NCBI GenBank assembly: GCA_024704765.1
Contig: JAKMXF010000010.1
Span: 1 to 57,827, forward strand
Length of the DNA: 57,827 nt
From: Oopsacas minuta
Lineage: Eukaryota > Animalia > Porifera
Direction: 5' to 3'
Positions within the stretch are counted from its first letter, which is position 1. The number at the start of each line of letters is the position of its first letter. A program made the translations under genes and the position numbers. The notes under the pieces are model-generated. The model saw nothing but the letters and a program-made list of their open reading frames with translations, was not told the origin of the DNA and did no database searches. Below are positions 17,053-57,827 of this stretch, piece after piece.

Positions 17053-17253
17053 GGGCCCAAGTTCAGTAATCTAAGATTGCCAGATACTAGTCCTTCTATT
17101 TATGGAGTCTATGCCCTGTATGTAAAATGTATTGGGTTAATTCAAAATGAAAAAATGAAAAATATTAACTCATCATCGCTAGTACTGTAGGGTAGTCCTC
17201 CTACAAACATTTTCGATCGGTCGTTTATAAATGGTCTCGATTTGTACAAACCA

Positions 17254-17532
17254 TAGAATTATCACTTAATTCATATCCAAGTTCTAAAGAAGTACATAAC
17301 ATATCTATGCAGAAATCGTTTCCACTTATGAACGGTATCTTGGGGGCCTGAAGGAATGTGAAACACTGCAACATCAGTATGATCATGCTAGTATCCAGTG
17401 GTATATTAGTGGTGTTGCTGTGTTTCACATTCCTTCAGGCCCCCAAGATACCGTTCATAAGTGGAAACGATTTCTGCATAGATATGTTATGTACTTCTTT
17501 AGAACTTGGATATGAATTAAGTGATAATTCTA
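17254..17532. repeat. Long palindrome: 113-bp perfect arms, 53-nt loop, derived from a THAP coding segment
   Basis: 17254-17366 is the exact reverse complement of 17420-17532; the right arm reads VFHIPSGPQDTVHKWKRFLHR. Confidence 0.95.
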
Positions 17533-18493
17533 CGATTGAGGATTAATTTATCATTACGTAATTATGAATTATATTATAGATCTTCACACAATGAAAACAT
17601 TTTGGTTTCTGCTAAGCACTTTGATTCTGATGATATAGTTGACACGCAAACTCATCTTAAAATTGATGGTCAAACGAAGATACGATCAATAAAGGCTACA
17701 TTGAAGAAATGTCCAATTCCTAAATATCTTCCTGGTTACCCTGATCGTCTTAAAGATCACGCTATTAAATATCCAAGGCTTGATAGAGACCATTAGATCA
17801 TGATTACAGATCCAAGTATGTCAAGTTGTGTCAAATATTCGACTTGTAGTATTATATGTTTTATGGTATTGTACTATATAGGCAACTAAACAGTGCGTTG
17901 ATGGATATGAAGAAGAGCAGAGGAAATTCATCGTCTCTAGTTGATGTATTTGAGGAAGAGCAGAGGAAATTCATCGTCTCTAGTTGATGTATTTGAGGAA
18001 GAGCAGAGGAAATTCATCGTCTCTAGTTGATGTATTTGAGGAAGAGCAGAGGAAATTCTTCGTCTCTAGTTGATATATTTGAGGAAGAGCAGAGGAAATT
18101 CTTCGTCTCTAGTTGATATATTTGAGGAAGAGCAGAGGAAATTCATCATCTATAGTTTCGATGACATGAACACTAAATAATGTGACGTAGAGATCCCCCA
18201 ACAATGGGAAGTTTGGAATATGGCTGATGTAATTAGCATCGTCCATCTGACAACAAGAGTTATTTTCTGTACAAGATAGTTTCAAGCATTGCTCTACCAA
18301 AACTTGTAGAATATATGACTGGAGAATGTGGATTCTCTTATGCATTATCATCTTTTATGACAAATAATCCATTTGAACACCATTTTGGAGTACTTACACA
18401 GATGTCAGGGTCAAACTATGATTTTTCTGTATGTCAAGTACTAGAAAGTAAAAGGGGTACTAAACTGGCCGAATATACTCAATTTCTATCATA
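17400..18493 (+). pseudogene. Second, internally deleted THAP/P-type transposase remnant
   Basis: THAP pieces GVAVFHIP..KWKRFLHR and VSAKHFD..LKKCPIP; C-terminal catalytic-E region GFSY.LSSF.TNNPFEHHFGVLTQMSGSNY (open as ORF 36030-36305 in the duplicate). Confidence 0.7.
17912..18150 (+). repeat. 43-bp minisatellite, about 5.5 units
   Basis: Unit gaagagcagaggaaattcatcgtctctagttgatgtatttgag starting at 17912, 17955, 17998, 18041, 18084, 18127. Confidence 0.95.
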
Positions 18494-18589
18494 GGAAAAA
18501 TTGTGATCGTAGAGATAGAGGCTTCTTTATAGAATTTATCAGTACATTTCGAATCAACAAGAATCTGGGTGGGGAGAGCCTACTATAAC

Positions 18590-19140
18590 AGACTGGTAGA
18601 ACTCCCTCAGAGACCTATGTGTTGAAGAATTTTTAGTCAATCCTCAACCAATTGGAGGGCCTGGGCATATTGTAGAATTTGATGAATCAAAGTTTGGACA
18701 TCGAAAGTATTAAAGAGGTCGTATGCTATCAGGTCAATGTGTATTTGGAGGGATAGATAGAGAAACAAAGGATACCTTTATGATACATGTTCAGGACAGG
18801 TTGGCTGCAACATCAATCCCTCTCATCCAGAGATATATTCTTCCGGGCACTACCATACTTTCTGACGAATGGGCTTCGTATAATTCTATCCCTGCTGCAA
18901 GTTTCAGCATCCCACCGTCAACCATAGTTTCAATTTTGTTGACCCTACTACAGGCGTACATACATAAACAGCTGAGAGTATATGGGGTGGTGCGGAGAAA
19001 CGGCTGACGAATTGCATGACTACTAACCCCATACTTTTAGATACTCACTTATCTGAAGTTTGTTGGCAGAAAGACTATGGACGAGGTAGTTTCTCCAACC
19101 TTATCATGGAAAATAAGGAAACAATATCCAGTTGTCTAAC
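18590..19140 (+). mobile_element. Merlin (IS1595/ISXO2-like DDE) transposase remnant
   Basis: IGGPGHIVEFDESKFGHRKY*RGR..VFGGIDRET..ILPGTTILSDEWASY..TVNHSFNFVDPTTGVHT..ESIW, with stops and frameshifts. Confidence 0.9.
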
Positions 19141-20259
19141 ATTTTTGATAGTTATCAGTAACCTATAATTAGTATCATACTTCTGCTTTGGTGTTTCTTT
19201 TGTAGCAGTACTTGTTATATTGTAGATTTGTAGTTAAAGTAGTAGATAGAAAGCTTAATACTAATTAGTTACTCCAAATATAACGACTACCCATAGTATT
19301 ATATCCAGCCATGGGATGTAATATATATATATAATATTCTGTCCACTATTATAAGTAGAAATCCATGAAAACTTTGTTCCAACATTACTAAGGCACCTGG
19401 AGAGAAGCTGGATCAGTAACTATGCGATTAAATAGTACATGAATTGTTTCTAACATTGATACGAACACAAACGAAAGATCAAAATTGGTTTGGCAAGGCC
19501 GGAGTAATACAAATTGAACTACGATTAAAGGAAACAGAATATATGCAAATATTGCGTCATATCGGGAATTCCATTAACTAGGTTCGAATTATCGAGGTCC
19601 CACAGTAGAAAATATTCAATGCAATGTTGCACTGTAGAATATTTAGTGTTGCTGACAGCTATCTTGTGACCTGCTTTCCTTTAAAGTAACAAGAAAATTA
19701 CCTGCAGTGAAATACACTGAATAGCAAACAAATGAGCATGAAAGAGTCGAGTAACACGCGTGTATAACCGCAATATCAACAGTATGCGCATTCCTATGGT
19801 AATTGTAATGTATAAATCAGTGAGTAATGCAATTCAAAGTTTATATTTTCCATTTTTGGTAACTACATAGTCGTGTTATTGTTTGTTGGAGAAAATGCTT
19901 ACTGTTGCTTCGCCATCTTCTGACTTTGACTCTGGGAATGAAGGTTATTATTATCGAAAATCGAAACCATTTGTAAAAGACCCATCGATCATTTTTGTCG
20001 GAGGACTACTCTACAGTACCAGTGATGGTGAGTTCATTTTTTTCATTTTTTCGTTTTGTAATTAACGCAATACATTTTTTATACAGCTGATTTGAACTGT
20101 AATTTTCACAGCTAACTTCTACCTCTAATTATTTCTTAATCCTTCATGCAGTTCTGTAGTTATGAATATTCAAGTTCTCGAATCAATCATAATTCCATCT
20201 TTAATCGCCTAATTATTCACAAAATATATTTAGAAAATATGAAAACAATTATTATTTCG

Positions 20260-28795: not shown

Positions 28796-29087
28796 AACAT
28801 TAGTCTCATTACTTATTAAACAACCCTTGTAGATGTAGAGATTGTTAAGATGATGAAAGATAAGATGAGTTAAAAGCCAAGGCTCCTCCAAAGGGTACTG
28901 ATGCTCCAGACATGTCCTATACAGAGAAATTGGCAATATTGCGTTAGGTGTATTCGTTTTGGGGGTATCAGCATGTACTGGGAATTCTAAATTAATGTCA
29001 GATTATTTGCGTCCAGCTCCTCAAACTCCGAGGAAAATTGGTGATGAAGAATTCAAAGAATACATCGAGCACTCCAATAATGATTAA
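28796..29087 (+). pseudogene. Mariner-3 TIR followed by a frameshifted C-terminal part of the AIG1/GIMAP-like gene
   Basis: cattagtctcattacttattaaacaacccttg|ta is identical to the junction at 57290-57324; what follows is homologous to 52020-52282 with a 4-bp deletion. Confidence 0.8.
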
Positions 29088-29126
29088 TTGTTTTTATCTT
29101 TGTAAATTTACTTTTATTAGATTTTT

Positions 29127-31449: not shown

Positions 31450-31720
31450 GGTGTGAATAGAAGCACCTCTGATCTCACGGCAGAAGACAATTACTATGGA
31501 GAGGGACAGGAGGCATATCAATCTGAGCTGAGACAGAGTAGCATATCACCTGAGGTATCTGAATTTCTTTACAACACAAGAGGAAGTACAAGATAAACAG
31601 AGGAAAGGAGAGCTATCTCGTCTCTATGATAACTACTTCTACCTATCTGATAAGTACTATCAGTTGTATCGCTGGCCGACAGTGGAGGAGGTGAGCAGAC
31701 ACGTGAACATAGACGCCAGA
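31450..31720 (+). pseudogene. EIF3L: eIF3 subunit L N-terminal fragment, frameshifted and cut by the hAT element
   Basis: ISPEVSEFL / (shift near 31570) ELSRLYDNYFYLSDKYYQLYRWPTVEEVSRHVNIDA resembles recalled eIF3L IPEVIKNFI..EIQDIYENSWTKLTERFFKNTPWPEAEAIAPQVGNDA. Confidence 0.65.
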
Positions 31721-33730
31721 ACTAGCAGTTTTGCTACTTTCCACAAATTGGGAAATTTATTTCGTCCTGCGATTGCAATCCAAAATCTTTCATACCCCAT
31801 CATTGTAAAATGAGCTTTTTCCTCGCAATCACTTTGCAAGTCCATCAACTCTTCCTGCAAATAGAGTGGAACTGTTGGGGCAGCCACACAGAAAGGGTCA
31901 ATTAGCCAATGAGGCGGTTCAAGTTCCAACAAGTCAGTGAATCGCTTGATCATATCCGCTTTCAGTACTTCAAGATGTTCACAATATGCTAGCAAATCGT
32001 CATCTGAAATTTGGAGTCCTGCTAGGTGAGGGAACTGGTAAAATTCTCGTCGAGCGATATTTTGTTTAAATAACGTTAGTTTCCCTATGAAGGAGCTGAC
32101 AACAGTTTTACACTTGACCAGAGTGACTAAATTGCCTTGTAGTTGCAAGTTGATTGCGTTGAACTTATCAAAAATGTCAGTCAAGTAAGCTACATCTGAT
32201 TTGGCTGCACTGACAAGCTGCATTAACTGCGGGTTCTCTTCCTCTAAAAATTCTAAAATCGTGTCGAAAAGACTGTAGAACCGACTGAGACACTTTCCTT
32301 TTGAGAGCCACCTCACTTTTGTGTGCAAAAGCAGACGTTCAAATTCAGTTTCGTTTTCGTGACATATTTGGCGAAATATTCTTTCCTTGACTGCGGAAGC
32401 TTTGATTTTATTAATAACAGTAATGACGATATGCAATGAGTTGTGCAAGCGACCACTTAGATGTTTTGCTACCAAATGTTCTCGATGGACGACGCAGTGA
32501 ATAGCGAAAACCTCAGGCACAGCATTTTTCCAGTACGAAATGAAACCACGATGCCTACCAACCATAGCTGGCGCCCCATCTGTTGCACAAGCAATGATAT
32601 TATTCATGGGAATTTCCTTTTCCTGAAAGAAATTTTCCACCACTTTGTAGATAGATTCACCTTTTGTATCAGTTACTAGTGGTCTAGCAAACAACATTTC
32701 TTCAACCATTATTCCTTCGAGAATATATCGGACATATGCAAGGAGCAGTGCTTCGTTACCTGGCAATGTGGATTCGTCAATTTGAAGAGAAAATTCCGTT
32801 GTTTTAAGTATAGTGTATAGTGTTTTCTCAACATCACTAGCCATCAAATTTATTCTCCTAGCCACAGTATCATTGCTTAACGGAATGGACTTAATCACAC
32901 TTCGCCCATCTGAATGCATAACAGTTGTAACTGCTTCCTGGATTGCAGGTAAAATGAGGTTTTCACCCATTGTATGTGGCTTACCAGATTTTGCGATTAG
33001 TAACGAAATGTTATAGGAGACAACCAAACCATCAATGTTTTGTCTATCTATTTTTCCAAATATTCCGCCCATTGTTTTTCGGCTGTCTCTCATTTTAATG
33101 AAGAATTGCACATCTTTCTCTACCTTATCACTGTGGCGCGATTTCAGATGATCAATCATTCTTGCCGGCTTCATTCCCTCATTAGAAAATACTTGTTCGC
33201 ACAACAAACACATTGGGAGTTGTTGATTGGAAGGAGATTTAACAAATCCGTATTTGATATAATCAGCACTATACTGTCTACACTTCTTTTTACTATTCAT
33301 TTCTTCGATCGAGTTTATCAATTCCTTTCGGTTTAGATTTCTACGTATGTATTTATATTGAAATTAAACAGATTACTAACTATTACGAAGTTTACATTTG
33401 TTTGAAGAACAATGATAATTATATTTCGATTAGGGAAGCCATAGACATTATAACAAAAGAATTCTTCATTAATTTTTAAGGATTAGCTGTTGTTAATAAT
33501 CACCAAGAGTATTACCACTGTAAAGGGCTTTGATAATTGAAGTATTTGCTAGCACCTATTGTTAATGAATAATGGGGAATATGATACCACTTTTTTTGAC
33601 CTGAGGTCGTATCTCTGTTTCGCTTTCTATAACCCACAGCGCCCCCCCAGCGCCCCCTTGCTGCGTGGCCGCCCCCTACAACCCTTCAGCGCCCCCCAGG
33701 GGGCTCTAGGGCCCACTTTGAGAAACACTG
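31721..33730 (-). mobile_element. hAT (Buster/Charlie-type) transposon, 5' end intact, 3' end truncated
   Basis: ORF 33321-31660 with BED finger (CLLC..H..H), FSLQIDES, CATDGAPAM, HCVVHREHL, RWLSKG; TIR cagtgtttctcaaagtggg at 33730; adjacent 8-mer atgtagac fits the nnnTAnnn target; catalytic E region absent. Confidence 0.93.
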
Positions 33731-36700
33731 ATGTAGACTATTAGAAAGAAGTTTCTTCAACAGTTGTACTCGAGGTAATGCAATAGCACCAGATTTTCGT
33801 AGCATTCTATACGCAGCTGGTGAAATGTTATGAAGTTCAGCAGCAAGAACATAAAGATTTGTATCAAAACGACGGGCTTTTGGTGCAGTAAGTAACAACC
33901 AGAGCTGAGCATACAAAAATTGATAATGGGGAAGTTCAGAGCAACACATACGACCCAATTCCTCAAGGGCACTTTTCACTTAGTCTGTGTCTTTGAATTC
34001 GTACTCTGGAATACTCGTTAAAATGCTATTGAATTGTGACCATTTGCTGATGAGGCTATTCTTCTGTAGGAAACCAGATTTGGAAAAATACGATTTGGGT
34101 ATTTCCTTTCCATTTTTCTCAACACATTTAAGGAATCAAAATCCAAATGGTGATTTCACAAGTTGTAAATGTAGAAACTGGACGACTGAACGTCCTTGTG
34201 CGTCAGTTTTGGACATGTAAACATCATCACCATCATGAATAATAAGATGATTTTGGAGAGAGGCTGTTGGATGACTGTACAAACAGAATCAAAGTCACCA
34301 AATGATCAAGAGCGTTAGTTCTAAGGTCTTCATTTCTGGCACGTACTTCTGCCGAAGAACTTGCTTTAAACAGGACTTTGGGACACCAGGGAAAATGGAT
34401 GGAGGTTGGCTAGGTCGTTTACCACCTTTAACTGTGACCCATTCACAGTCAAAATGATGGTAACAAGCATATATTTGGCTGAGTTGTAACAGACTGGAGC
34501 GTTCATTTGGCATAGCATCAATCCAACCATCTCGCTCATCTTCATCACTTGGAAATTGTACTACTTTTGTGTATGGTTCACACCTGTAATTTCCACGACA
34601 TCCAAGTACGTTACGCTTCTCAGGCATTATAAAGTAAATACCAACACCACCTTTCAAATGCAGTTGTAAATTGGATGATTCCCAGCACCAGAAATGCTAG
34701 TAAAGCTACAATACAAACCTGAAAAAAAAACATAATACAGCGGCATGAGCTACGGACAGCCTCAGGTGACGCCAGGTGACGCCAGGAGCGGCGATAAAGC
34801 GAAAGCTTTCCATGACCTGTCATGTTTATTACGCAATGACGTCGTTGCGTCATGATACAGTGGGACCCAAGTTCAGTAATCTGAGATTGCCAGATACTAG
34901 TCCTTCTATTTATGGAGTCTATGCCCTGTATGTAAAATGTATTGGGTTAATTCAAAATGAAAAAATGAAAAATATTAACTCATCATCGCTAGTACTGTAG
35001 GGTAGTCCTCCTACAAACATTTTCGATCGGTCATTTATAAGTGGTTTCGATTTGTACAAACCATAGAATTATCACTTAATTCATATCCAAGTTCTAAAGA
35101 AGTACATAACATATCTATGCAGAAATCGTTTCCACTTATGAACGGTATCGTGGGGGCCTGAAGGAATGTGAAACACTGCAACACCACTAATGTACCACTG
35201 GATACTAGCATGATCATACTGATGTTGCAGTGTTTCACATTCCTTCAGGCCCCCATGATACCGTTCATAAGTGGAAACGATTTCTGCATAGATATGTTAT
35301 GTACTTCTTTAGAACTTGGATATGAATTAAGTGATAATTCTACGATTGAGGATTAATTTATCATTACGTAATTATGAATTATATTATAGATCTTCACACA
35401 ATGAAAACACTTTGGTTTCTGCTAAGCACTTTGATTCTGATGATATAGTTGACACGCAAACTCATCTTAAAATTGATGGTCAAACGAAGATACGATCAAT
35501 AAAGGCTACATTGAAGAAATGTCCAATTCCTAAATATCTTCCTGGTTACCCTGATCGTCTTAAAGATCACGCTATTAAATATCCAAGGCTTGATAGAGAC
35601 AATTAGATCGTGATTACAGATCCAAGTATGTCAAGTTGTGTCAAATATTCGACTTGTAGTATTATATGTTTTATGGTATTGTACTATATAGGCAACTAAA
35701 CAGTGCGTTGATGGATATGAAGAAGAGCAGAGGAAATTCTTCGTCTCTAGTTGATGTATTTGAAGAAGAGCAGAGGAAATTCATCGTCTCTAGTTGATGT
35801 ATTTGAAGAAGAGCAGAGGAAATTCATCGTCTCTAGTTGATGTATTTGAGGAAGAGCAGAGGAAATTCTTCGTCTCTAGTTGATATATTTGAGGAAGAGC
35901 AGAGGAAATTCTTCGTCTCTAGTTGATGTATTTGAAGAAGAGCAGAGGAAATTCATCGTCTATAGTTTCGATGACATAAACACTAAATAATGTGACGTGG
36001 AGATCCCCCAAGAATGAGAAGTTTGGAATATGGTTGATGTAATTAGCATCGTCCATCTGACAACAAAGAGTTATTTTCTGTACAAGATAGTTTCAAGCAT
36101 TGCTCTACCAAAACTTGTAGAATATATGACTGGAGAATGCGGATTCTCTTATGTATTATCATCTTTTATACATAATACTCCATTTGAACACCATTTTGGA
36201 GTACTTACACAGATGTCAGGGTCAAACTATGATTTTTCTGTATGCCAAGTACTAGAAAGTAAAAGGGGTACTAAACTGGCCGAATATACTCAATTTCTAT
36301 CATAGGAAAAATTGTGATCGTAAAGATAGAGGCTTCTTTACAGAATTTATCAGTACATTTCCAATCAACAAGAATCTGGGTGGGGAGAGCCTACTATAAC
36401 AGACTGGTAGAACTCCCTCAGAGACCTATGTGTTGAAGAATTTTTAGTCAATCCTCAACCAATTGGAGGGCCTGGGCATATTGTAGAAATAGATGAATCA
36501 AAGTTTGGACATCGAAAGTATTAAAGAGGTCGTATGCTATCAGGTCAATGTGTATTTGGAGGGATAGATAGAGAAACATAGGATACCTTTATGATACATG
36601 TTCAAGACAGGTTGGCTGCAACATCAATCCCTCTCATCCAGAGATATATTCTTCCGGGCACTACCATACTTTCTGACGAATGGGCTTCGTATAATTCTAT

Positions 36701-37497
36701 CCCTGCTGCAAGTTTCAGCATCTCACCGTCAACCATAGTTTCAATTTTGTTGACCCTACTACAGGCGTACATACACAAACAGCTGAGAGTATATGTGGTG
36801 GTGCGGAGAAACGGCTGAGGAATTGCATGACTACTAACCCCATACTTTTAGATACTCACTTATCTGAAGTTTGTTGGCAGAAAGAATATGGACGAGGTAG
36901 TTTCTCCAACCTTATCATGGAATAAGGAAACAATATCCAGTTGTCTAACTGTTTTGATAGTTATCAGTAACCTGTAATTAGTATCATACTTCTGCTTTGG
37001 TGTTTCTTTTGTAGCAGTACTTGTTATATTGTAGATTTGTAGTTAAAGTAGTAGATAGAAAGCTTAATACTAATTAGTTACTCCAAATATAACTACTACC
37101 CATAGTATTATATCCAGCCATGGGATGTAATATATATATAATATTCTGTCCACTATTATAAGTAGAAATCCATGAAAACTTTGTTCCAACATTACTAAGG
37201 CACCTGGAGAGAAGCTGGATCAATAACTATGCGATTGAATAGTACATGAATTGTTTCTAACATTGATACGAACACAAACGAAAGATCAAAATTGGTTTGC
37301 CAAGGCCGGAATAATACAAATTGAACTACGATTAAAGGAAACAGAATATATGCAAATATTGCGTCATATCGGGAATTCCATTAACTAGGTTCGAATTATC
37401 GATGTCCCACAGTAGAAAATATTCAATGCAATGTTGCACTGTAGAATATTTAGTGTTGCAGACGGAATTATGTAATAACCAGCTTTCCTTTAAAGTA
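33731..37497 (+). repeat. Segmental duplicate of about 15909-19688 (P/THAP 5' half, palindrome 35064-35342, minisatellite 35722-35965, Merlin remnant about 36410-36950)
   Basis: Colinear and near-identical by eye; repeated ORFs in the track (16141/33987, 16966/34776, 17521/35331, 18723/36591). Confidence 0.95.
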
Positions 37498-43650: not shown

Positions 43651-44715
43651 CTATATTGTTGGATGAGTAAATATATTAATTGAATTTCCCCAATTATCGC
43701 TAATTATAATATTATTATACAAATCAAAACACAGAAAAATCAATCCTTCTCCATTTTCTAAATTTATGAAACTTTTCAACAAATCACCTGATTTAGAGAA
43801 TATGTGTATATTATTCATCTCATTATTGTCTGCTGCAAATATTATATTATTATTTATTTTGACGTCACGCGGGTGTCTGAGTTTGTCTTTTCCCATTCCT
43901 CTAATATATTTTAAATCAGAGCTGAATACTGCAATTCTATTATTATAAGAATCTGCAACTAACACTTTTCCATTTGTATCAGTTGTTAGACCAACAGGGA
44001 CATTTACACCTTCCTTAACACTCTTAATTAATTTGTAATTTGTTTTAGAGAATTTAAATATAGTACGAAATATCCAATCACTTATAAACACCCATTCGTT
44101 ATGTAATGCTATACCGTATGGAGGATATAGCTGCCCCTTACCAAATTCATGAATGAACTTACCCTCTGTAGAGAAGATCTGTATACTATCATTGTTTTGA
44201 TATGCAGTATAGATCTTATCTCCATCCAGAGCTAGTCCATGAGGGAAATACATTTCTCCTTTCTTATTGCCATAACTCCCAATACTTCTGATGGGCTCTG
44301 TCTTGTTTCTGTAGGGTACAGCTATAACCTGAATAGACCCCAACTTCTCCAGCTGTTTTAGGAGAGAGTCTAGACCCTCAGTATTGAGGGAAGGGGTTGG
44401 GATAGGTGTTTCATTTTCACATTTCTGTATTTCAGCTCTTGTTTGCCTCATCTGTTCTTCTTGAAACTTTACTACTTCGTTCTGCTGAATGCTAGTTTCC
44501 ATTAATTGTTGGATTATCTTCTCCAAGTCTGCTACTTGTTTCTTTCTTGTATTCTCCTTTCTTAGATAGTCCTGCTTGATATCGAACAGCTGGACAAGCA
44601 GCTGATTTCTCCTCTCTGTTGCAATCCTAATTATCTTATCGAACGTGGAATGGATGAGTTGTTCCGCTAGTTCGAAATGGTTGGTAGGAATTTCATCTGG
44701 GTATTTGGTGGCCAT
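43651..44715 (-). CDS. Coiled-coil + NHL-repeat (TRIM2/3/71-like C-terminal) protein, last blade truncated
   Basis: FPHGLALDGDKIY, YPPYGIALHNEWVFISD, PVGLTTDTNGKVLVAD, LRHPRDVKI; diverges from its paralog after INIFT; tataaat about 45 bp upstream. Confidence 0.88.
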   Translation of the reverse strand: MATKYPDEIPTNHFELAEQLIHSTFDKIIRIATERRNQLLVQLFDIKQDYLRKENTRKKQVADLEKIIQQLMETSIQQNEVVKFQEEQMRQTRAEIQKCENETPIPTPSLNTEGLDSLLKQLEKLGSIQVIAVPYRNKTEPIRSIGSYGNKKGEMYFPHGLALDGDKIYTAYQNNDSIQIFSTEGKFIHEFGKGQLYPPYGIALHNEWVFISDWIFRTIFKFSKTNYKLIKSVKEGVNVPVGLTTDTNGKVLVADSYNNRIAVFSSDLKYIRGMGKDKLRHPRDVKINNNIIFAADNNEMNNIHIFSKSGDLLKSFINLENGEGLIFLCFDLYNNIIISDNWGNSINIFTHPTI

Positions 44716-45362
44716 TTGTTTGTTATTCTGTTTATGATTAGTCTCATCTACAGACTGTATTTATACAAATTGCACGTGAATAGAAGTTACAACTAATCCA
44801 ATTCCTTGAACTCTACCACGAGACTATTGTCTCACAGAATTACGGATGTGTTAGGGTTAGGTCAGATAGCTTTCAATGTGTATATTAGTTCCAGTTATAA
44901 CTACCCACATTCCTTGTATAGAATTAGTTGCTATGCTATATCAGCTATCAGTTTCAATTTGTTATTCTAATCATTTCTTGTATTTTCCTCCTTCAAATTT
45001 TGTCGGGAAAAATATGACAATATAGAGTTTCTTATATCATCGGTCAATAAGCCTTCTGAAGCTAATCTCAAATAACATTTCACTTTCGCCACTCTTATAT
45101 TCATCAGAAACTTGTTTCAGTTCCGCATTTAATACACCTGAACATGCATTTTGTCTGGCGGTTCTTTATCATTATCTCATCATTTTGTGAATTGGAAAAT
45201 TGGTTCATTGATTTCATTCACAGAAATATTATAACTGCTAAACTCAAGTTTTGCTATGAGAATTAGTTTTGAGTATGAATAATACTTCCATTGTATTCTA
45301 ACCAGTTTATACAACTTGTAGTTGAAATACATTGAGTAAATGGTGAAATATTGACAATAATG

Positions 45363-47125: not shown

Positions 47126-48481
47126 GTATTGTATATTCTATAGAATAGCATTATGGTTATATTATACATAGATTAATATATAATTATAATATACCCATAA
47201 CATTATACACAGAATCAGATATAAGTAGTAGATTAGTTATTTCGTATTTGCTTTACAAACTTTTACTACAAATCTTCATAAAAAACTTACAGGTAAGTTG
47301 GCTTCTATGCCTTGGTGTCTACCCAGCACCTTATTATACAGAAATGAGATTAATTATTGCTTGTTTTCTTTATAAGATATAATTCCTACAAGAAGTGTGT
47401 TTGGATTTACCATAACCATCTTATTGTCATCGTTCTATAACACGCCTTTTTGAATGGCTACCGCTTCCCCATTATGTTTACATAACACCATTCCCTTAGT
47501 AGCATCGTAATTATCACATTTCTACAGGCCTACGAAGACAAATGTTCTGAATTAGCTAGCTATGTACTGGAAATTTCTGAATCTAGAGAGGCTCATTCAA
47601 AGAAATACGGTGTAATTATAGCAGTTGATGGTTACGTCACTTACATCTGAATAAAATGGGCTGAAGTTATGTTTATTCTTTAGATCACATGTGGGTAAAG
47701 TGCGGACCGCATGAGGCCCAAATAAATTTTCTGACACTCTTAACCATCATTGACTTGAGATGAGTATTGCATAGAACAATTCGTTAATGATTATTGTATT
47801 AATTATGATTAATCATATTTTGATAATGTAAATATTGCAGGGCTGTAGGAAGCAAAGAACATTAGTTTGGTGAAAAGTAAACGGAGCGAGCAAACAAAAG
47901 TGAGGTTCTGTGTGGTCTTTCCCTCTAGGGATTTTGACCCTTTCACACACTTAGTCGGAGGTTTAGATGCTGTTTTATGTATTGTAAACACATTCTATTA
48001 GAACATTTGTGTTATGAAATTAGTGAATATACATATATTTTGGAGGTTTACTATTCTACATCTTATCTCCAATGTCACACCTTAGAGCACCTGCTCCTAC
48101 GGCCCTGTATTGTATAACGAATGAAAATATATAAAATCTCGAATTTGTCTCAGTAAATTTCCATAATTTTGACAACAAAATTTCAAGGAAGAAAATACAA
48201 GAAATGATTAGAATAACAAATAGACACTGATAGCTAATATAGCATAGCAACTAACTCTATACAAGGAATGTGAGTAGTTATAACTGGAGCTAATTTACAT
48301 ATTGTAAGCTATCTGACTTAACACATCCATAATTCTGAGACAATAGTCTCGTGGTAAAGTTCAAGGAAATGGGATTTGTTGCAACTTTCTATTTCACCAC
48401 TTGACACCTGAATAATTAACCTACAAACTTGTATAAATACAGTCTGTAAATGAGACAAATCATAAACAGAACAACAAACAA

Positions 48482-49630
48482 ATGGCAACTAAATACCCAG
48501 ATGAAATTCCTACCAATCATTTCGAACTAGCGGAGCAGCTGAACTATTCCACGTTAGAGAACATAATTCGATTGCGACAGAGAGGAGAGATCAGCTGTTC
48601 GATATCAAACATTCCTATCTGAACAAGGAGATGACAAGAAAGAAACAAGTATCAGACCTGGAGAAGCTAATCCAACAATTAATAGAAACTAGCATTCAGC
48701 AGAACCGAGTAGTAAAGTTTCAAGAAAACAGATGAGGCAAACAAGAGCTGAAATACAGAAACACGAAAATGAACCACCTATCCCAATCCCTTGCCTCAAT
48801 ACTGAGGGTCTAGACTCTCTACTAGAACAGCTGGAGAAGTTGGGGTCTATTCAGGATATAGCTGTACCATACAGAAACAAGACAAAGCCCATTAGAAAGA
48901 TTGGGGGTAAGGGCAGTAAGAAAGGGGAGCTGGATATTCCTCGTGGACTAGCTCTAGATGGAGATAAGATCTATATAGCAGATGCAAAGAATAATAGAAT
49001 ACAGATCTTCTCTACAGAGGGTAAGTTCATTCATGAATTTGGTCAGAGGAAACTAGTTTATCCATATGGTATAGCATTACATAACGAATGGGTGTTTATA
49101 AGTAATTTGGGACTTCAAGCTGTATTTAAATTCTCTAAAACAAATTACAAATTAATTAAGAGTGTTAAGGAAGGTGTTAGTGTCTCTCTTGGTCTAACAA
49201 CTGACACAAATGGAGAAGTGTTAGTTGCAGATTCTGGTAATATAATTGCAGTATTCAGCTCTGATTTAGAATATATTAGAGAAATAGGAATGGCAAACTC
49301 ATAAACACGAGTGACGTCAAAATAAATAATAATAAGATATTTGTTGCAGACAATAATGAGATAAATAATATTTACGTATTCTCTAAATCAGGTGATTTAT
49401 TGAAAAGTTTCATAAAATTCGAAAATGGAGGAAGAGAAATTTTTCTGTGTTTTGATTTGTATAATAATATTATAATTAGCTATAATTGGGGAAATTCAAT
49501 TAATATATTTACTAAAGATGGACAGCTGATACACAAAATTAAATGTAATAATCCTACAGGAATAGTTGTTAATAATAACTTTGATATTATTTGTGCTAGT
49601 CATGATGATAATGTAATAAATATATATTAA
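48482..49630 (+). pseudogene. Frameshifted NHL-repeat paralog (inverted duplicate of 43651-44715)
   Basis: ATG at 48482 MATKYPDEIPTNHFELAEQL is identical to copy 1; frameshifts near 48570, 48725 and 49300; retains the full C-terminus ..HDDNVINIY*. Confidence 0.9.
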
Positions 49631-51555
49631 TTATATTGCTGTTTTAACATATTTGTTTGTAATTATAGTAAAGGCGATCTATGGTTTGAGGCCCGTGAGT
49701 GGAGTCAAATTTTTAATGTGGCCCGTAGGTTTAAAAGTTTTAGCACCCCTGCTATAGGCATTAATATTCATTTATTTCTGTTTTAGTTCAAAGCTCTATT
49801 ATTAACCCTGGAATTCCGGTTATATAATAATTGTATATCACCTTATTTTCTATATATCAATTACTTCAACACACTAACACTAACATTGATGGAATTTGGT
49901 CTACAAACTGATTAAAGGAATCAAACATACTTTGAAATGTTCCCACAAATGATAAGTTACATTTTTAATATTAACTTAGTGAATTCATTTTGCTATTTAA
50001 AATATATTATTTTCTAATAGAATAATAAGGAAATCTAATTAAAATCCACTCAACAGACTTTCAATAGAATCCAGATTGATAAACAGAATACATCTATCAG
50101 TTATCAAATGTTAATTGAAATTATGGAATATTTCGAAAATTTTTTGGAACTCAAATATAATAGAAGAAATACACTAAATAAGTGCTGTGTGTATGGAATG
50201 TAATATAACTATAACAAACTAGATTAAAGCATATACCAAATAAGGAAATAATGTATTATTAGATTTTAGGCGCTAACAAAGGTTAATTAGATTACAAAGA
50301 TTAACTAATTGGTTCCTATTTTGAAAATTATTCAAATTCCAATCTATTAAACCTGTAACTAAGTTAGTGAATATAATTACTGTAATTAGAAATTATATTA
50401 CCGCTTATAGTGAGTAGTTCAAATGTTAAGAAATACATGGAAATACATTATTGAGTAATTACATTAACGTTTCCCTAATTAGATTATGTGTAATTAATGA
50501 ATAATTTGTGATTAGTGTAATGCTATTATTAGAAATGTAAATGGTTGATAAGTTTATGTTCAATAGTAAATAAAAGAGAATTCAGTGGACACCCGAAGGA
50601 TGCCAACCCCGAACATAAAGTGTTCGCTTGCCGCGAAACGCAAGTAAGCATAGCTTGCTTGTATTTAATAGAATGTATTAACCAATAGAATTACAGTCTC
50701 CATCAATACAATACATTACAGTACTAATTAAATTACAAACACTTCATCAGAACTAATTTTATGCATTTATGCCTAATCAAAAACTCTACAATCTGATTGG
50801 CTAAAATATTCCTACAATCTGATTAGACGCGGGCGTTCAATGAATAACGCAATTTGGAGAATTTCCCGTTGATTTCCTATAATGTGGTTATCGTGTTTGG
50901 TGAATCTTGTTTAAATCAAGCAAAGTCTCAAAGTTATTGCGTGAATGTACATACTCGGGATTTATGAGTCTATTCCTTTTGTGTATAGAATGCACTATTA
51001 GTTAGTTGAGTTACCATAAACTACAGCAAATGACGCCTATAACTATTATTCGGTGAACTTTTTCCTTTTCTGTATAATGTTTTCCCAAAAATATCGATTT
51101 GACTCTTAGAATCGCCGGGTTTCCCCCTTAATTATTGGATATATCTGTAACTATTAACTTTTTCAAATGAATTCTCTGATATATTAATTTTCGTGAGGTA
51201 TGATGAATTTCCTCAAGTTTGACGGGTCACAAGGGTATATTTGCGAAAAATCATTTCTTGACAACGGCGGTGTGTGGTAACATTCCATGATGCTCAGTAC
51301 ATTCAAATCTCAATATTCCACAAGCTAAGAATACAAATAAATACGACTATATTATGATAAAAGTCTTTCCCCTGGGCTAGCATGATTCCAACCCTGCACA
51401 AGCTCTTGGCCCATCCGAGGAGTTAATACGTGAGTACAGAACTGGACAGTGGGCTTGATTGATCACTTGATAATCTCCATGCTGTACCCCAGTCTTGAGT
51501 TGAAATTATCACACCTTTTGAATTATTTATTATTGTTTGTTAACAGTTAAAAGAA

Positions 51556-51616
51556 GGTGTTGTCTTAAGACAAGGCATAGCTTAACTGATGAGTCCTAGC
51601 GGGACGAAACACCACT
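51556..51616 (+). ncRNA. Type III hammerhead ribozyme
   Basis: GGUGUUGU-C-UUAAG-ACAAGGCAUAG-CUUAA-CUGAUGA-GUCC-UAGCG-GGAC-GAA-ACACCACU: complete conserved core, stem I 5 bp, stem II 4 bp, stem III 7 of 8 pairs, GUC cleavage triplet (C51564). Confidence 0.85.
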
Positions 51617-51962
51617 ATAATATGTATATAATCAAAAAATATATTTTATGAATCTTTAATAGCATTTCCTCCAGCATACATTGTAGTGTTGTCACAAATT
51701 ATGTCATATTATTTTATATTAATTATTGATATTCCCTTTCATTTCTAGGTGCTAGCAACTCAAATACTTTTCCAAAGGATGATGAAAAATTACAATGTTG
51801 ATAACAATAATAATATAATAATAATAATGAATGCACTGCAACATATTTATTATGTTTAATTTCGTATTTAGTAAAGAACCAGAAGAGAACTTTTTATTAT
51901 GGCACGGCCATACACCAGTGTGCACACGTGCACACCAAGCACGTCCATACTGCAACATATAC

Positions 51963-52282
51963 ACAAGATTCTAGAAATATCACAAATTATCAAGCAGAAT
52001 AATGAAGGGAGAGAATACATAGATGTAGAGATAGTTAAGAAAATGGAAGATAAGATAAGTAAGTTAAAAGCCAAGCCTCTTCCAACGGGTGCTGATGCTC
52101 CAGGCATGTCCTATACAGAAATATTGGGAAATATTGTATTAGGTGTATTCATTTTCGGGGTATCAGTATCTAGGGGAAATTCAAAATTATTGACGGATTA
52201 TTTACATCCAGTTCCTCAACCTCCGAGGAAAATTGATGATGAAGAGTTCCAAGTATTTACCGAACACTTCAAAAATGATTAA
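51963..52282 (+). pseudogene. C-terminal fragment of the AIG1/GIMAP-like gene, without the mariner insertion
   Basis: 57 of 58 bp identical to 55946-56003, then an open frame EYIDVEIVKK..ILGNIVLGVFIFGVSVS..FKND*. Confidence 0.7.
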
Positions 52283-52737
52283 TTATTTTACATATTTTTC
52301 CTAACTGTACATTCATGATGTATCATGAATTTTATTTTATATTATTTATCATAACAGGTACATTACTATTGACTAATAATTATTCCTTACTTGTCGTACT
52401 TGTGTATAATCTGTCACTACACGGAAATGGGTATTATTACTTTTATATTGAACATTTCTCTTAACGTAATTGTATTGAATATTATTCTCTATTAAGTTTT
52501 TAGGAAACATTTCAAATTTGCTATGCTATCTAGTATTTTGTGTAAGTCTGAACTTAGTACATTTGGTGCGTACATTCCATCGGTCGTTTGTTTATGACTT
52601 TATATTGTATAATACTCACCAAACTATTTGTATATTTTTTCATATGAAGACATTTCTTGCCTTTTGAGGTTTAAAATACTTAGATAGTGCTACACATTGA
52701 TTTCATAGTTTCTTTAGTTGGTAATTGCTTCGTTGAG

Positions 52738-52853
52738 CAGGGCTGTATCAACTGATTGTTTTCTACCAACTCATTCATTTTTATTGCACCAACTCATTCA
52801 ACTCATTTCAACTCATTTCAACTCATTCAATAAAATGAGTTGATACAGGCCTG
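52738..52853. mobile_element. hAT-type MITE (116 bp) with internal caactcatt repeats
   Basis: TIRs cagggctgtatcaact / agttgatacaggcctg; TSD tcgttgag/tcattgag (7 of 8). Confidence 0.85.
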
Positions 52854-53398
52854 TCATTGAGTGTCGCGATTTTCCCAAATACTGTATTCATTTTACAGTA
52901 GCGTCGATGTCCCACAATTCGTTCCACGGCATTTTCACTATTTCAGAGGTAACTATCATTTCTATTCCTCAATGAGGTAGATTGCTTTGACAAACTACCT
53001 CACATTCGCATGATTTATCGGGAGATGCCGGTACATCATCTATGTAAGATATACGTGGATAAACCGTCCCAGAGATGCCAATTCTATAGGCCTTTTGACT
53101 CTCATGGATAAATGTCAAAGAATTTGAGTGATCTCACGATTGAATACTAAATTCTGATAAATTGTAGCCGTTCTCACAAGTACTCATGGATTCTTGAGAT
53201 ATCAGATTGGCATCTATATCTATCTATGTAGAATTGTAGATGTATCTCAGAATCTTCCAATAATAACATAGGGACTGATTTAAATGAAACCGTAGAAAAC
53301 AATTCTAGTGCAATAAATTCTTGAGGTAACATTTACATTGTTTGTTACAGTATATTTGTCATTACTGCTAATTACTGAAATTATTTGTAGCTATCTTT

Positions 53399-53535
53399 AT
53401 GGAACTTCTTGAATACGAATCGATTTCAAATTTAATTACAACAGATTGTTATCCATCAGGCTATACGAAAAATCAGAAGAGAGTTTTCGAAGAAGAGCTT
53501 CTAACTACCGACTATATAACGAAAACTGGTTGAAC
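53399..53535 (+). mobile_element. Possible Ginger/Gypsy-integrase N-terminal remnant
   Basis: YPSGYTKNQKRV/RRRASNYRLYNE with one frameshift resembles the YP.G..K..KR.IRR.A..F.L motif. Confidence 0.4.
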
Positions 53536-54223
53536 CCTCTACCTCAAGAATTCATTACACTAGTATTATTTTTCTAAGGTTTCATTTAATCGATCATGAC
53601 AATACAGTATACGGCAAGGGACAATATTTGTAGAGGGGACAATTTTTGACGAGTAACATGGATATTTTACAAAATCTGTCCCCCCGGACAATTTATGTAG
53701 GGGGACTATTTTTGTCAAACACTACCGTCTATGATGGCTATAATAAGGTAACAAAATAAACACTGAATCCGAATTTCGTGTTGTCAATTTTCTCATATGT
53801 AAATTAATTTACATTTTATGAATATAAAGTAAACAAATATTTGAAATCTTGAAATAATAGTAGAGACTTGCTCTCAACGGATAGATAGGGGTAACAAAGT
53901 ACGCTGAATCCGGTGACCTGAAATTACATCAGCGCAGACGGTGACTTGAGATTTTTCTATCTATTTGCACTGAAGCTGAGAGATTTTTCAGGGATTAGTA
54001 TAAATCCCTATTGTGAATTACATATTTGTAATTCTGAACTTGAATGAAATACATGATCTGACACTCCCAGTCTGTCTTGCTTGACATTTTTGGTTAATAA
54101 TCACTCTATTGTAATTGCTTCCTTACATTAATGTAGTTTCTTGGATTTCAAGTTGATTTAACAATTAGCATGGGAACTACACAGTCTATTCCTGCACATA
54201 GAAGTTTTGTACTTATTGGGAAA

Positions 54224-54829
54224 TCAGCTAATGGTCTTGAAGGTGCCATCAGCTAGCCAGATCTTGCTTTGCCGCAGCATCCTGAGGTTGCGTTGTGTCC
54301 CGAGGATGACAAATCTGTGTACATCATCCTCACCAGAGTCGTAGAGTAAGAACTGCTCTCCCTTGGCTGTCTGCTGGTATACTGGTGGTAGAGCTAGCTC
54401 TGCTAGAGTGGTAGGCTGTGCTGGAGCTGCAAGTACACTAGCACGTTGGCGTTGTATCGTCCGCTTCAGGCTGTCCAGTTTGGGGAGTTTAGCAGCAGTA
54501 CCCTCTGATGCTGTTTGCAAACTCTCGCCCACTATGTGGTGTGTGCTATCCTGGGACTCCCGTGCTTTCCTCTTCATGTCTGCCTTCGCTTCACAACAGC
54601 CCGCTGCCTGCTCGTCAGGCCCATGAGAGTGCTCATTCGTGCGCTTGACTATTACCATCTCTTTGGTATGGACTCTAGCTTTGCAGATTCCTCTTTGCTC
54701 ACACAACCGATGCGTCACATCTCAAACTCTCCTCTGTACTCCAAATAAATATCCACTCTCCAACAGCTTATCTCCTCCTCTTTGTGACTTGATCAGCCTA
54801 AACGTCAGCTGATTAAGAGGTTCTGCCAT
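54224..54829 (-). mobile_element. FLYWCH + MULE transposase 5' remnant
   Basis: ATG 54829, SQRGGDKLLESGYLF, in-frame TGA, LCEQRGICKARVHT..HSH, FLLYDSG..RFVILGT..WLADGTFKT, then truncation. Confidence 0.88.
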
Positions 54830-55293: not shown

Positions 55294-56004
55294 TTGAATA
55301 CTGACACTTTGAATACAAAACTAATGGAAATCATGACTCGAAAAAGTTGGAAGCAATTATCCGAGCTTCTACAGCGAGTTAATAACAGATATATGTTCGT
55401 AAATGCAATGAACAGAGAACCTGGTTATCGTGAAGAGATTCTACAGAAACTGTTTGAACTTTCTAAACCTGTTGTGAAGGCTACATTCCATGGAAGTACA
55501 GGCTTTACATGTGAAGACTTACAGACACTATTCAAAGATAACAGCTGTGATATATCACATCCCAAATGTCACCTACAGTGTACTTTTTGTGATTTTCAAT
55601 GCACACAGGACAATCCTAATTTGGAATCATTTATCTCTAGAGTAAGACAATTAACACACGGTATTTCTGTGATTGTACTCCAAATAAATCTTAATAATGA
55701 TCTGAGCGAGCAGTCATTGAGGTTAATAACTGGATTGCCTGAATGTTATAAGCTAGGAGGAGATGGAGAGAGTGAATTTTGGAAATACACATTTATCTTG
55801 TTTAAGTTTGAAGCAGAACAGGAGGATCCAATTGGGTATATTCATAAACAATGTGAGAGATACGGGTGTATCAGAGAATTATATGAGAAATCTGGAAAGA
55901 GAGCTACATGGGTGACTGAACACATGACACGAGATCAATGTATTAACAAGATTCTAGAAATATCACAAATTATCAAGCAGAATAATGAAGGGAGAAAATA
56001 CATG
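55294..56004 (+). pseudogene. AIG1/GIMAP-like gene, N-terminal part, interrupted by mariner 3
   Basis: HGISVIVLQINL..SEQ, FWKYTFILF, IRELYEKSGKR, KILEISQIIKQNNEGRKY resemble the post-G3 part of the AIG1 domain; no GxxxxGKS or DTPG. The apparent tail MQELFNK* is mariner TIR sequence. Confidence 0.6.
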
Positions 56005-57322
56005 CAAGAGTTGTTCAATAAATAATAAGACATTCTTTCATAATTCATACAGTAAACCTATACTTATCATAATTGATTATCAAATGTTTCGATACATTCC
56101 CCCTTTAACTTTATACATCGTTTCCATCGTTCTGGTAACTTTTCCAGCCCAGTGGTATAGAATTCTTTAGGGGTTCCTTTTTCCCACTGTTTATTTCGTA
56201 CTCTAGCCATTTGAATCCTCAAATCTCTTCCCTCGAAGAGGTCACTTCAGCTCTCCAAACAGCCAGTAGTAGCTGGGAGCCAGGTCTGGACTATACGGGG
56301 GATGAGGGAGGTATTCGAATCCTAAGTCGTCAATTGCAGCCATTGTCTTGGAGCTTACATGGGGGCCTTGCGTTGTCATGTTGCAACAATACGCCACGTG
56401 TCCACTTGCCTCGCCTCTCACGTTTAATCGCTTGACGCAATTCTTTCAATTTGTCAACATAATAATCACTGTTTATTGTTGTCTTCTTAGGCAACCAGTC
56501 GAGGTGTATAATTCCTTCCCTATCCCAAAATACTGTTGCCATTCTCTTCCCCTGCTGCTGATTGTGCGGCCTTTACCTTGATGGGTACAGGTTCATCACG
56601 TCTCTTCCACTGCTTCGATTGAGTTTTGCTCTCTGGTTCATAATAATGAAACCAAGTTTCATCTCCCGTTACTATACGATCCAAAAAGTCTTCCCCTGCT
56701 TTGTATCTTGAAAGTAATTCTTTGCTAACTCTGACCCTTTCGCGTTATTGTCCCACTGAAGGAAGTTTTGGGACCCAACGCGCAGTTACCTACGACATTT
56801 CCAGATTTTCAGTGATAATCGAGTGTAGTGTGGCTTTTGACATACCTACCCTCTCTTCTAAATCTTGCAGGGTTATTCGTCTGTCCTTGTCCAAAATTGT
56901 TTGGACCCTCTCGATATTACTGCGGGTTTTTGAGGAAGTCGGACGACCTGGACGAGGGTCATCGTGGAGGTCCTCATCGCCATTATCAAAACGTTCGATC
57001 CATCTATATATGGTGGCTATCGAAGGACATTCATCACCGACAATATCCCGCATTTCACGAAGAATGTTTGAGCCAGTCTTGCCCTTTTCCACAGGTACCA
57101 AATTATCTGTCGTTTTCCTTCTTTGCTAAGTCCATTAGTTGAAAAAAGTAGCGGATACAAATGAAACTTTATACTGAAGAATATGCTAGTAGAGTAAATA
57201 GCATATTGTGTATCGAAGTTAGACAATCAAGTTAGGCGTGTAATCTGTTATTAGGCTTAGAGCTGTATTAACTAGAATATGAATTCGATACATTAGTCTC
57301 ATTACTTATTAAACAACCCTTG
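56005..57322 (-). mobile_element. Mariner (DD34D) element 3, full length (1318 bp), degenerate
   Basis: TIRs caagagttgttcaataaataataagac / gtctcattacttattaaacaacccttg (23 of 27); TSD TG/TA; DDPRPGRP, WVPK, TGDETW, HDNARP, PPYSPDL across stops and frameshifts. Confidence 0.92.
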
Positions 57323-57827
57323 TAGATGTAGAGATTGTTAAGAAGATGAAAGATAAGATAAGTTAAAAGCCAAGGCTCCTCCAAAGGGTGATACAATGTG
57401 GTCTGAGTTCTCTCAATCGTGTGATCAATAATTATCAGAATCCTGATGTGATCGACTTCTCTGCTATCTCATCACCTCCACCTGCTTCTTTCCTACCTTG
57501 TGCACAGATGTCAGAGAGACAGCAGCAGGTGAAGGAGAGAAAAGAGGCCGTCTACTCTCCCATCCAGAATTTTCCCATCGACGGACACTATTACCTGAAC
57601 ACGAGCCTGTCCGACTCAAGTGAAAAAGTTGATAAGCGAAGTTTCCCTCGAGCTTATCAGCTGTCTGAAGCAGTAGACCAGCATTACTCACTGGGTGACA
57701 AACCTCACGACTTTGAGGCATTACGAATAGCTGTTTCTGATGAAGATAACATCTCAGAGGTCACTTCCTATCCAAGTGAGGGTGACTTTGAGGAGGGTGT
57801 TGTGTCTGCCTGGAAACAACAAGTAAG
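57323..57827 (+). pseudogene. PCM1: GIMAP-like C-terminal stub fused by deletion to PCM1_C copy C (runs off the right edge)
   Basis: 57323-57390 matches 28830-28897; from about 57394 an open frame QCGLSSLNRVINNYQNPDVID..DFEALRIAVSDEDNISEVTSYPSEGD matches copies A and B. Confidence 0.8.

Follow-up and report, generated by a model that had tools for sequence, protein, structure and literature searches.

The window analysed here, a stretch of 57,827 nucleotides from contig JAKMXF010000010.1 of the assembly GCA_024704765.1, carries at positions 51556–51616 what its letters support as a genuine-looking type III hammerhead ribozyme in an animal, the glass sponge Oopsacas minuta. On balance, we favour the view that this motif genuinely belongs to a small type III family carried on dispersed O. 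minuta repeats, and that the copy in the window is a stranded and non-autonomous one, lying in a 2.65-kb patchwork of sequence that would either interrupt a repeat, here termed Q, or have been deleted from the commoner short form of Q. The class of motif is well known, and the O. minuta copy adds a member to it. In the literature searched, the hammerheads of animals are of type I and belong to retrozymes and Penelope-like elements, and type III motifs come mainly from plants and also from viroid-like RNAs and prokaryotes, in agreement with an earlier reading of the same DNA from its letters (the sequence-only reading), which had stated that animal hammerheads are mostly type I and that type III is typical of plants. 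The same literature yielded no hammerhead connected with sponges and none linked to a DNA transposon of a eukaryote. The presence of a multi-copy type III motif in a glass sponge broadens the picture of animal hammerheads, almost all of which are type I and are associated with retroelements.

As RNA, the letters of 51556–51616 run, in order, GGUGUUGU-C17, UUAAG-(ACAAGGCAUAG)-CUUAA, CUGAUGA, GUCC-(UAGCG)-GGAC, GAAA and CACCACU, and the opening of the motif before stem I, that is, the stem III 5' strand together with C17, reads GGUGUUGUC. The parts of the motif are as follows.

51556–51616, plus strand: type III hammerhead, whole motif (letters read; full-length match to Rfam Hammerhead_3)
51556–51563 and 51564, plus strand: stem III 5' strand and the cleavage nucleotide C17 (U51560 stands opposite C51612)
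51565–51585, plus strand: stem I hairpin, UUAAG/CUUAA with the 11-nt loop ACAAGGCAUAG (letters and Rfam alignment)
51586–51592, plus strand: core CUGAUGA, C3 to A9 (letters and descriptor scan)
51593–51605, plus strand: stem II hairpin, GUCC-UAGCG-GGAC (letters; pair probability 0.8)
51606–51616, plus strand: core GAAA, G12 to A15.1, and the stem III 3' strand (letters and Rfam alignment)

Every canonical core nucleotide is present: C3–A9 occupy 51586–51592, G12–A15.1 occupy 51606–51609, U16.1 is 51563 and C17 is 51564, and the G10.1–C11.1 pair (51593, 51605) is found at the base of stem II. Stem I consists of 5 bp under an 11-nt loop and stem II of 4 bp under a 5-nt loop, the cleavage triplet is GUC, and stem III comprises eight positions with a single U/C mismatch (51560/51612). 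Loops cap stems I and II and stem III is open, and the order of helices is therefore that of type III. The sequence-only reading had claimed a complete canonical core and three stems in type III order, and both the core nucleotides and the helix order bear this out; it had also counted a single copy in the stretch, and a descriptor scan, a repeat finder, BLAST and a pattern search give no second one. The descriptor, which combined CUGANGA, stem II and GAAA, was run on both strands and met only this site. If the plus strand is transcribed, three helices would form around the CUGAUGA/GAAA core, and the predicted cleavage site would lie after C51564, the RNA presumably cutting itself between C51564 and U51565 to leave a 2',3'-cyclic phosphate and a 5'-OH.

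The covariance-model check called for by the sequence-only reading came out partly in its favour, in that a search of 66 nt (51552–51617) gave an Rfam Hammerhead_3 alignment covering model positions 1–54 of 54, in the same register and with the U/C in stem III as its sole non-standard pair, at a score of 28.6 bits (E-value 6e-5 for the 66 nt searched) that does not reach the gathering score of 48.5. The type III alignment emerged only in this 66-nt search; an E-value search on 401 nt returned only a type I alignment in the wrong register, at 16.8 bits, and the whole 57.8-kb window searched at Rfam gathering thresholds gave no match. By our own scaling, to Hammerhead_3 alone over approximately 61 Mb, the E-value becomes roughly 0.01. 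The number of motifs at least as good that is expected by chance, computed from the base composition of the window, is 3e-6 per window and approximately 0.004 per genome of approximately 61 Mb, and it rises to approximately 0.85 over 250,000 windows, so that one such motif alone is unsafe evidence at that scale. It could be argued from this last figure, from the Rfam score under the gathering threshold, and from the weakness of stem I and the position of the motif outside the predicted minimum free energy (MFE) fold, that an AT-rich genome has spelled the core with pairable flanks by accident. We consider such a chance look-alike very unlikely, as only about 0.004 are expected in the O. minuta genome, the stretch is multi-copy with a variant, T51560G, that mends the single mismatch, and the letters of stem II, GUCC/GGAC, are those of at least 120 natural type III hammerheads.

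The evidence for copies comes from Logan contigs of four runs of one sample, placed on 50300–53300 at 80% likeness, whose depths are summed values and not copy numbers. Over 51512–51612 the summed contig depth is 1138–2831, against approximately 190–445 for single-copy contigs, a difference of approximately 3–8 fold; it is approximately 2–3 times the single-copy value in the bin 51613–51713, lower farther on, and mostly near the single-copy value across 51714–54202. We conclude that the motif belongs to repeated DNA, because the read contigs stack there at several times single-copy depth, and this copy thereby contributes read-level evidence for a multi-copy state. Among the 40 best-supported differences shown, T51560G is the only variant inside the motif. 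It is carried by two to seven distinct contigs per run and turns the U/C mismatch of stem III into a G-C pair; by our own count, a stem III pair would be regained by only 3 among 183 possible single substitutions. As judged from these letters, T51560G would offer modest but real support, from one variant position only, for selection on the fold within the family. By depth, T at 51560 is commoner than G in three of the four runs, and the T and G versions are therefore both multi-copy.

The same contigs differ from the assembly in other ways. At single-copy depth they show 1-nt insertions or deletions relative to it at 51292, 51343, 51369 and 51413, and there are many substitutions elsewhere in 50300–53300. 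These differences are either long-read errors kept in the assembly or the result of the reads having come from another individual; in view of the insertions and deletions, reading frames in GCA_024704765.1 need care.

Whether this copy could act as a ribozyme was judged from predicted folds. With T51560, as in the window, the hammerhead fold has a predicted energy of -7.3 kcal/mol against -15.5 kcal/mol for the MFE fold, and the pair probability of stem III is approximately 0; with G51560, the corresponding energies are -14.0 and -16.0 kcal/mol, and the stem III pair probability is 0.7–0.9. In the best fold with T51560, stem III is slid by three positions and A14 and A15.1 are swallowed into pairing. 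Stem I, which is short, AU-rich and absent from the predicted MFE fold, is weak in both versions, with pair probabilities of 0.02–0.03 for T51560 and 0.15–0.21 for G51560. The competing structure involves one further feature.

51560–51573, no strand assigned: 14-nt perfect palindrome TTGTCTTAAGACAA, a competing hairpin (self-match on the opposite strand; part of the MFE fold)

The palindrome is centred on TTAA and spans the cleavage site, and a perfect palindrome of 14 nt is expected approximately 0.01 times per 150 nt by a rough estimate of our own. Its hairpin is longer with T51560 and shorter with G51560, so U51560 facing C51612 would both break stem III and lengthen the palindromic hairpin over the cleavage site. 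The palindrome might serve as a switch in the RNA or as a protein site at the level of the DNA. Because its predicted hammerhead fold (-7.3) loses to the misfold (-15.5), this copy is probably slow or dead as a ribozyme, and a functional role for this copy alone is unlikely, while copies with G51560, for which the correct fold is predicted, should be the better ribozymes. The T/G51560 difference provides a natural pair with broken and intact stem III that is well suited to a comparison of cleavage.

The surroundings of the motif are made up of repeats and fragments, of which the principal ones are the following.

51364–51548, no strand assigned: left part of repeat Q, multi-copy, abutting the hammerhead segment (border placed from the end of a local duplicate at 51363)
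51549–54206, no strand assigned: 2.65-kb mosaic, missing from the abundant short form of Q (join in a 205-nt Logan contig)
51963–52289, plus strand: GIMAP/AIG1-like gene-family fragment inside the mosaic (98% to 55946–56003; 83–86% to 28830–29094 and 57323–57390)
54207–54232, no strand assigned: right part of repeat Q (exact match to 26 nt of the 205-nt contig)
54233–54718, minus strand: FLYWCH-MULE transposase fragment, truncated at ...DGTFKT (158 relatives; alignment)

Immediately upstream, 50868–51363 has a 497-bp local duplicate of 97% identity at JAKMXF010000010.1:60689-61178, 9.8 kb downstream. The homology to this duplicate ends exactly at 51363, and the foreign block therefore starts at 51364. 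The left part of Q has a summed depth several to tens of times that of single-copy contigs, and a breakpoint among Q copies lies within it at 51434/51435. A 205-nt Logan contig with a depth of 1745 (single-copy contigs in that run, approximately 190–445) joins 51370–51548 to the match of 54207–54232; this join of 51548 to 54207 implies an abundant short form of Q that is without 51549–54206. The hammerhead begins 8 nt into this mosaic. The letters AGTT stand at 51545–51548 and are repeated at 54203–54206, a pair compatible either with a 4-bp target duplication left by an insertion or with microhomology at a deletion. A spliced junction was rejected as an explanation of the 51548/54207 join, because none of the five registers allows a GT-AG, whichever strand is read. 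A reading of 51430–51547 as a GT...AG intron was unsupported. A Helitron reading of Q was rejected, since its flanks lack the A|T pattern and there is no hairpin at the 3' end.

The mosaic contains small hairpin repeats, a short dispersed repeat found at four further places in the window, and stretches of single-copy depth, and no transposase, reverse transcriptase or partner ribozyme was found in 51549–54206. Its GIMAP/AIG1-like fragment begins with 51963–52020, which shares 98% identity with the end of AIG1-domain ORF 55294–56022 and is fused to a 270-nt piece that occurs also at 28830 and 57323; in two other copies a conserved intron-like tail (...CCCTTGTAG) stands before this piece. The fusion point lacks GT-AG borders, and in the neighbouring gene a mariner-like ORF separates the two fused parts. 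The GIMAP-like fragment that had been reported approximately 350 nt downstream of the motif on the same strand is thus real as DNA, at 98% identity, and lacks a GTPase domain: the ORF 51899–52282 has no Pfam domain and no protein relatives in a search covering proteins of 0.55–1.75 times its length. The link of the hammerhead to the GIMAP-like piece looks incidental. Beyond the right part of Q, the FLYWCH-MULE fragment has 158 relatives, many of which bear the names of O. minuta FLYWCH or MULE proteins. At three paralog loci the match starts only at 54234 and no hammerhead is present, and the paralogs run on normally past the point, after DGTFKT, at which the window copy is cut; the fragment is a neighbour of the hammerhead unit and not its host. 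Many of its relatives, at 60–74% identity, come from one ENA assembly.

Upstream of the motif, no ORF longer than 47 aa was found in the 1.9 kb of 49630–51556, and the frames there stay closed after the four 1-nt corrections supported by reads at single-copy depth. Seven small ORFs of the repeat have no entry in the protein collection. Neither the motif, nor repeat Q, nor the 2.65-kb segment is bordered by terminal inverted repeats above the level of shuffled controls.

What kind of element would have carried such a hammerhead can be asked of Q itself. The motif could be native to a small non-coding mobile repeat, a long form of Q consisting of Q-left, the hammerhead unit and Q-right, and not to a Ginger-type element (discussed below); the abundant short form would then have arisen from the long one by microhomology-mediated internal deletion. 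At least one contig, of approximately 90% identity over 51482–51659, holds Q-left and the hammerhead contiguously, contigs with G51560 extend at least 63–69 nt on either side of it, depth continues unbroken across 51548/51549 in two runs, and AGTT at both breakpoints suits a microhomology deletion. The 90% contig is of low depth, however, and may be a divergent haplotype of the same locus, as similar low-depth contigs of 92% lie on the nearly single-copy flank 51007–51323; the mostly near single-copy depth of 51714–54202 means that no long form shares this interior; and no poly(A) tail, terminal repeats or other repeat hallmarks were found around the hammerhead and Q. We regard a long form of Q as a doubtful host. 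SINE-like carriers of hammerheads do occur in other animals, for example Sm-alpha of Schistosoma, and a long form of Q, if it exists, would resemble these.

Less likely still is spread by way of self-cleaved, possibly circular, RNA, as a retrozyme or Penelope-like retroelement, which the sequence-only reading had raised and which we hold to be improbable here. The motif is multi-copy, the hammerheads of eukaryotic repeats have so far been tied to these two kinds of element, and the fused two-exon piece of a nearby gene family in the mosaic could hint at reverse transcription, but the fusion does not respect GT-AG borders, and the two strands of the 57.8 kb together contain a single hammerhead, which is not bordered by direct, tandem or LTR-like repeats. 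A Pfam scan of the 20 ORFs that are 110 aa or longer gave no reverse transcriptase or GIY-YIG ORF; the earlier remark that no reverse transcriptase is visible is thereby upheld, and the Penelope-like family suggested alongside it is left without its expected coding sequence in the window. Moreover, cleavage of a type III motif placed at the 5' end would remove the motif's own 5' strand, so that it would not be inheritable through the cleaved RNA. Plant LTR retrozymes resemble the present case in having a type III hammerhead on a non-autonomous, multi-copy genomic repeat, but they carry one in each of two LTRs, approximately 600–1000 nt apart, and give rise to circular RNA, whereas the hammerhead here is single and has no direct repeat. 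Animal non-LTR retrozymes and Penelope-like elements share with it an animal genome and an AT-rich repeat setting, but their motifs are type I, often minimal, in tandem units or pseudo-LTRs with an adjoining reverse transcriptase/GIY-YIG ORF, none of which is seen here. A regulatory ribozyme domesticated on a host transcript, for example that of the GIMAP-like ORF 283 nt downstream, is highly improbable. That ORF (51899–52282) is on the same strand, and there is a precedent in the discontinuous type III hammerhead of the mammalian Clec2 3' UTR, which likewise has type III topology, lies in an animal nuclear genome and, by analogy, might limit a transcript by removing its tail. Yet the Clec2 hammerhead has a very large helix I and a conserved host gene, whereas the present one is compact, repeated and surrounded by transposon debris; the downstream ORF is a fragment, with neither domain nor relative in the searches described above; the intact neighbouring gene 55294–56022 is without a hammerhead; and the motif is multi-copy and mismatched in this copy. 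The suggestion of a domesticated self-cleaving RNA thus does not sit well with a motif that has a destabilising mismatch and stands in a patchwork of repeat fragments. With a second hammerhead, tandem unit, LTR, reverse transcriptase and transposase all absent in cis, the retrozyme, Penelope-like and domestication readings are unsupported here. This copy exemplifies how hammerheads orphaned in transposon debris can be mistaken for domesticated ribozymes.

Returning to the favoured reading, that of a stranded member of a hammerhead family on dispersed repeats, the likely parent of the stranded copy would be a cut-and-paste transposon of the Ginger type with the hammerhead in its 3' UTR, where it would trim or limit the transposase transcript. 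Such a parent for this copy is suggested, weakly, by what may be the end of an element.

51686–51696, plus strand: weak candidate for a Ginger/Gypsy-type element end, ...GTGTTGTCACA, compatible with YNACA (terminus rule TGTNR; PMC2836005)

Ginger elements have 4-bp target duplications and TGTNR/YNACA ends (PMC2836005). The resemblance consists of the 4-nt repeat that borders the mosaic and of the sequence ...GTCACA, which ends at 51696, 80 nt past the motif, and whose last five letters, TCACA at 51692–51696, are compatible with YNACA, a type of 5-mer that by our own estimate is common by chance; contig depth has already dropped in the bin 51613–51713, in which this candidate end lies, and declines further past it. 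On the other side, no match to an integrase-type (rve) DDE transposase was found among the window ORFs scanned with Pfam, the candidate end has no partner inverted repeat in the window, and the AGTT-flanked unit 51549–54202 does not have the ends TGT...ACA; the paper that describes Ginger (PMC2836005) mentions no ribozyme. We put forward, as a tentative possibility and one that may well prove mistaken, that the stranded copy represents a ribozyme module of Ginger-type DNA transposons in an early-branching animal, operating through a cut in the 3' UTR and a switch formed by T/G51560 and the palindrome. Cutting of the transcript would yield a tail-less and hence self-limited transposase mRNA, or else a defined 3' end, and the T/G51560 polymorphism together with the cleavage-site palindrome would switch the ribozyme on in some copies and off in others. 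If true, this would be a partnership of ribozyme and DNA transposon that is undescribed for eukaryotes in the literature searched.

Comparison with known type III hammerheads shows a close likeness in architecture. The members of RF00008, which come from viroids, satellite RNAs and plant genomes, share with the O. minuta motif the core, the order of helices, the capped stems of 5 bp and 4 bp and the GUC triplet; the motif differs from them in its score (28.6 against 48.5 bits), in its 11-nt loop 1 with eight inserted bases, in the one mismatch of stem III, and in its host, a sponge nuclear genome. A scan of metagenomes with a pattern built from the motif's own letters gave at least 120 loci, the majority of which are compact type III hammerheads. 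These have the same core and stem II, CUGAUGAGUCC...GGACGAAAC, and the same UGUC/GAAACA base of stem III, but mostly have a GC-rich stem I of 6 bp, a loop of 4–6 nt and a total length of 45–48 nt, and none of the metagenome matches listed has a stem I or flanks like those of the O. minuta motif. We take these compact hammerheads to be mostly bacterial or phage in origin. A covariance model made from the metagenome loci was set aside as circular, since the loci had been selected with the motif's own letters. On several of the metagenome contigs, compact type III hammerheads occur in twos or threes, at spacings from a few hundred to approximately 1300 nt, and presumably resemble the arrays of phage and bacterial genomes.

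Elsewhere in the window, the neighbouring genes are eukaryotic in kind, with NHL-repeat, TRAF/MATH and AIG1/GIMAP members, and are accompanied by mariner, P-element-like and MULE fragments. A 553-aa ORF at 31660–33321 on the minus strand is without a Pfam match. An inverted duplication of 1.3 kb, at 88–90% identity (43666–45024 and 48154–49513), carries two NHL-repeat ORFs, which lie on opposite strands in divergent orientation, approximately 3 kb apart. A segmental duplicate of 96–99% identity, with its two copies (16019–19622 and 33865–37429) 17.8 kb apart, holds P-element-like (TNP-like RNase H) and THAP ORFs, together with 43-nt tandem arrays and a 131-nt hairpin.
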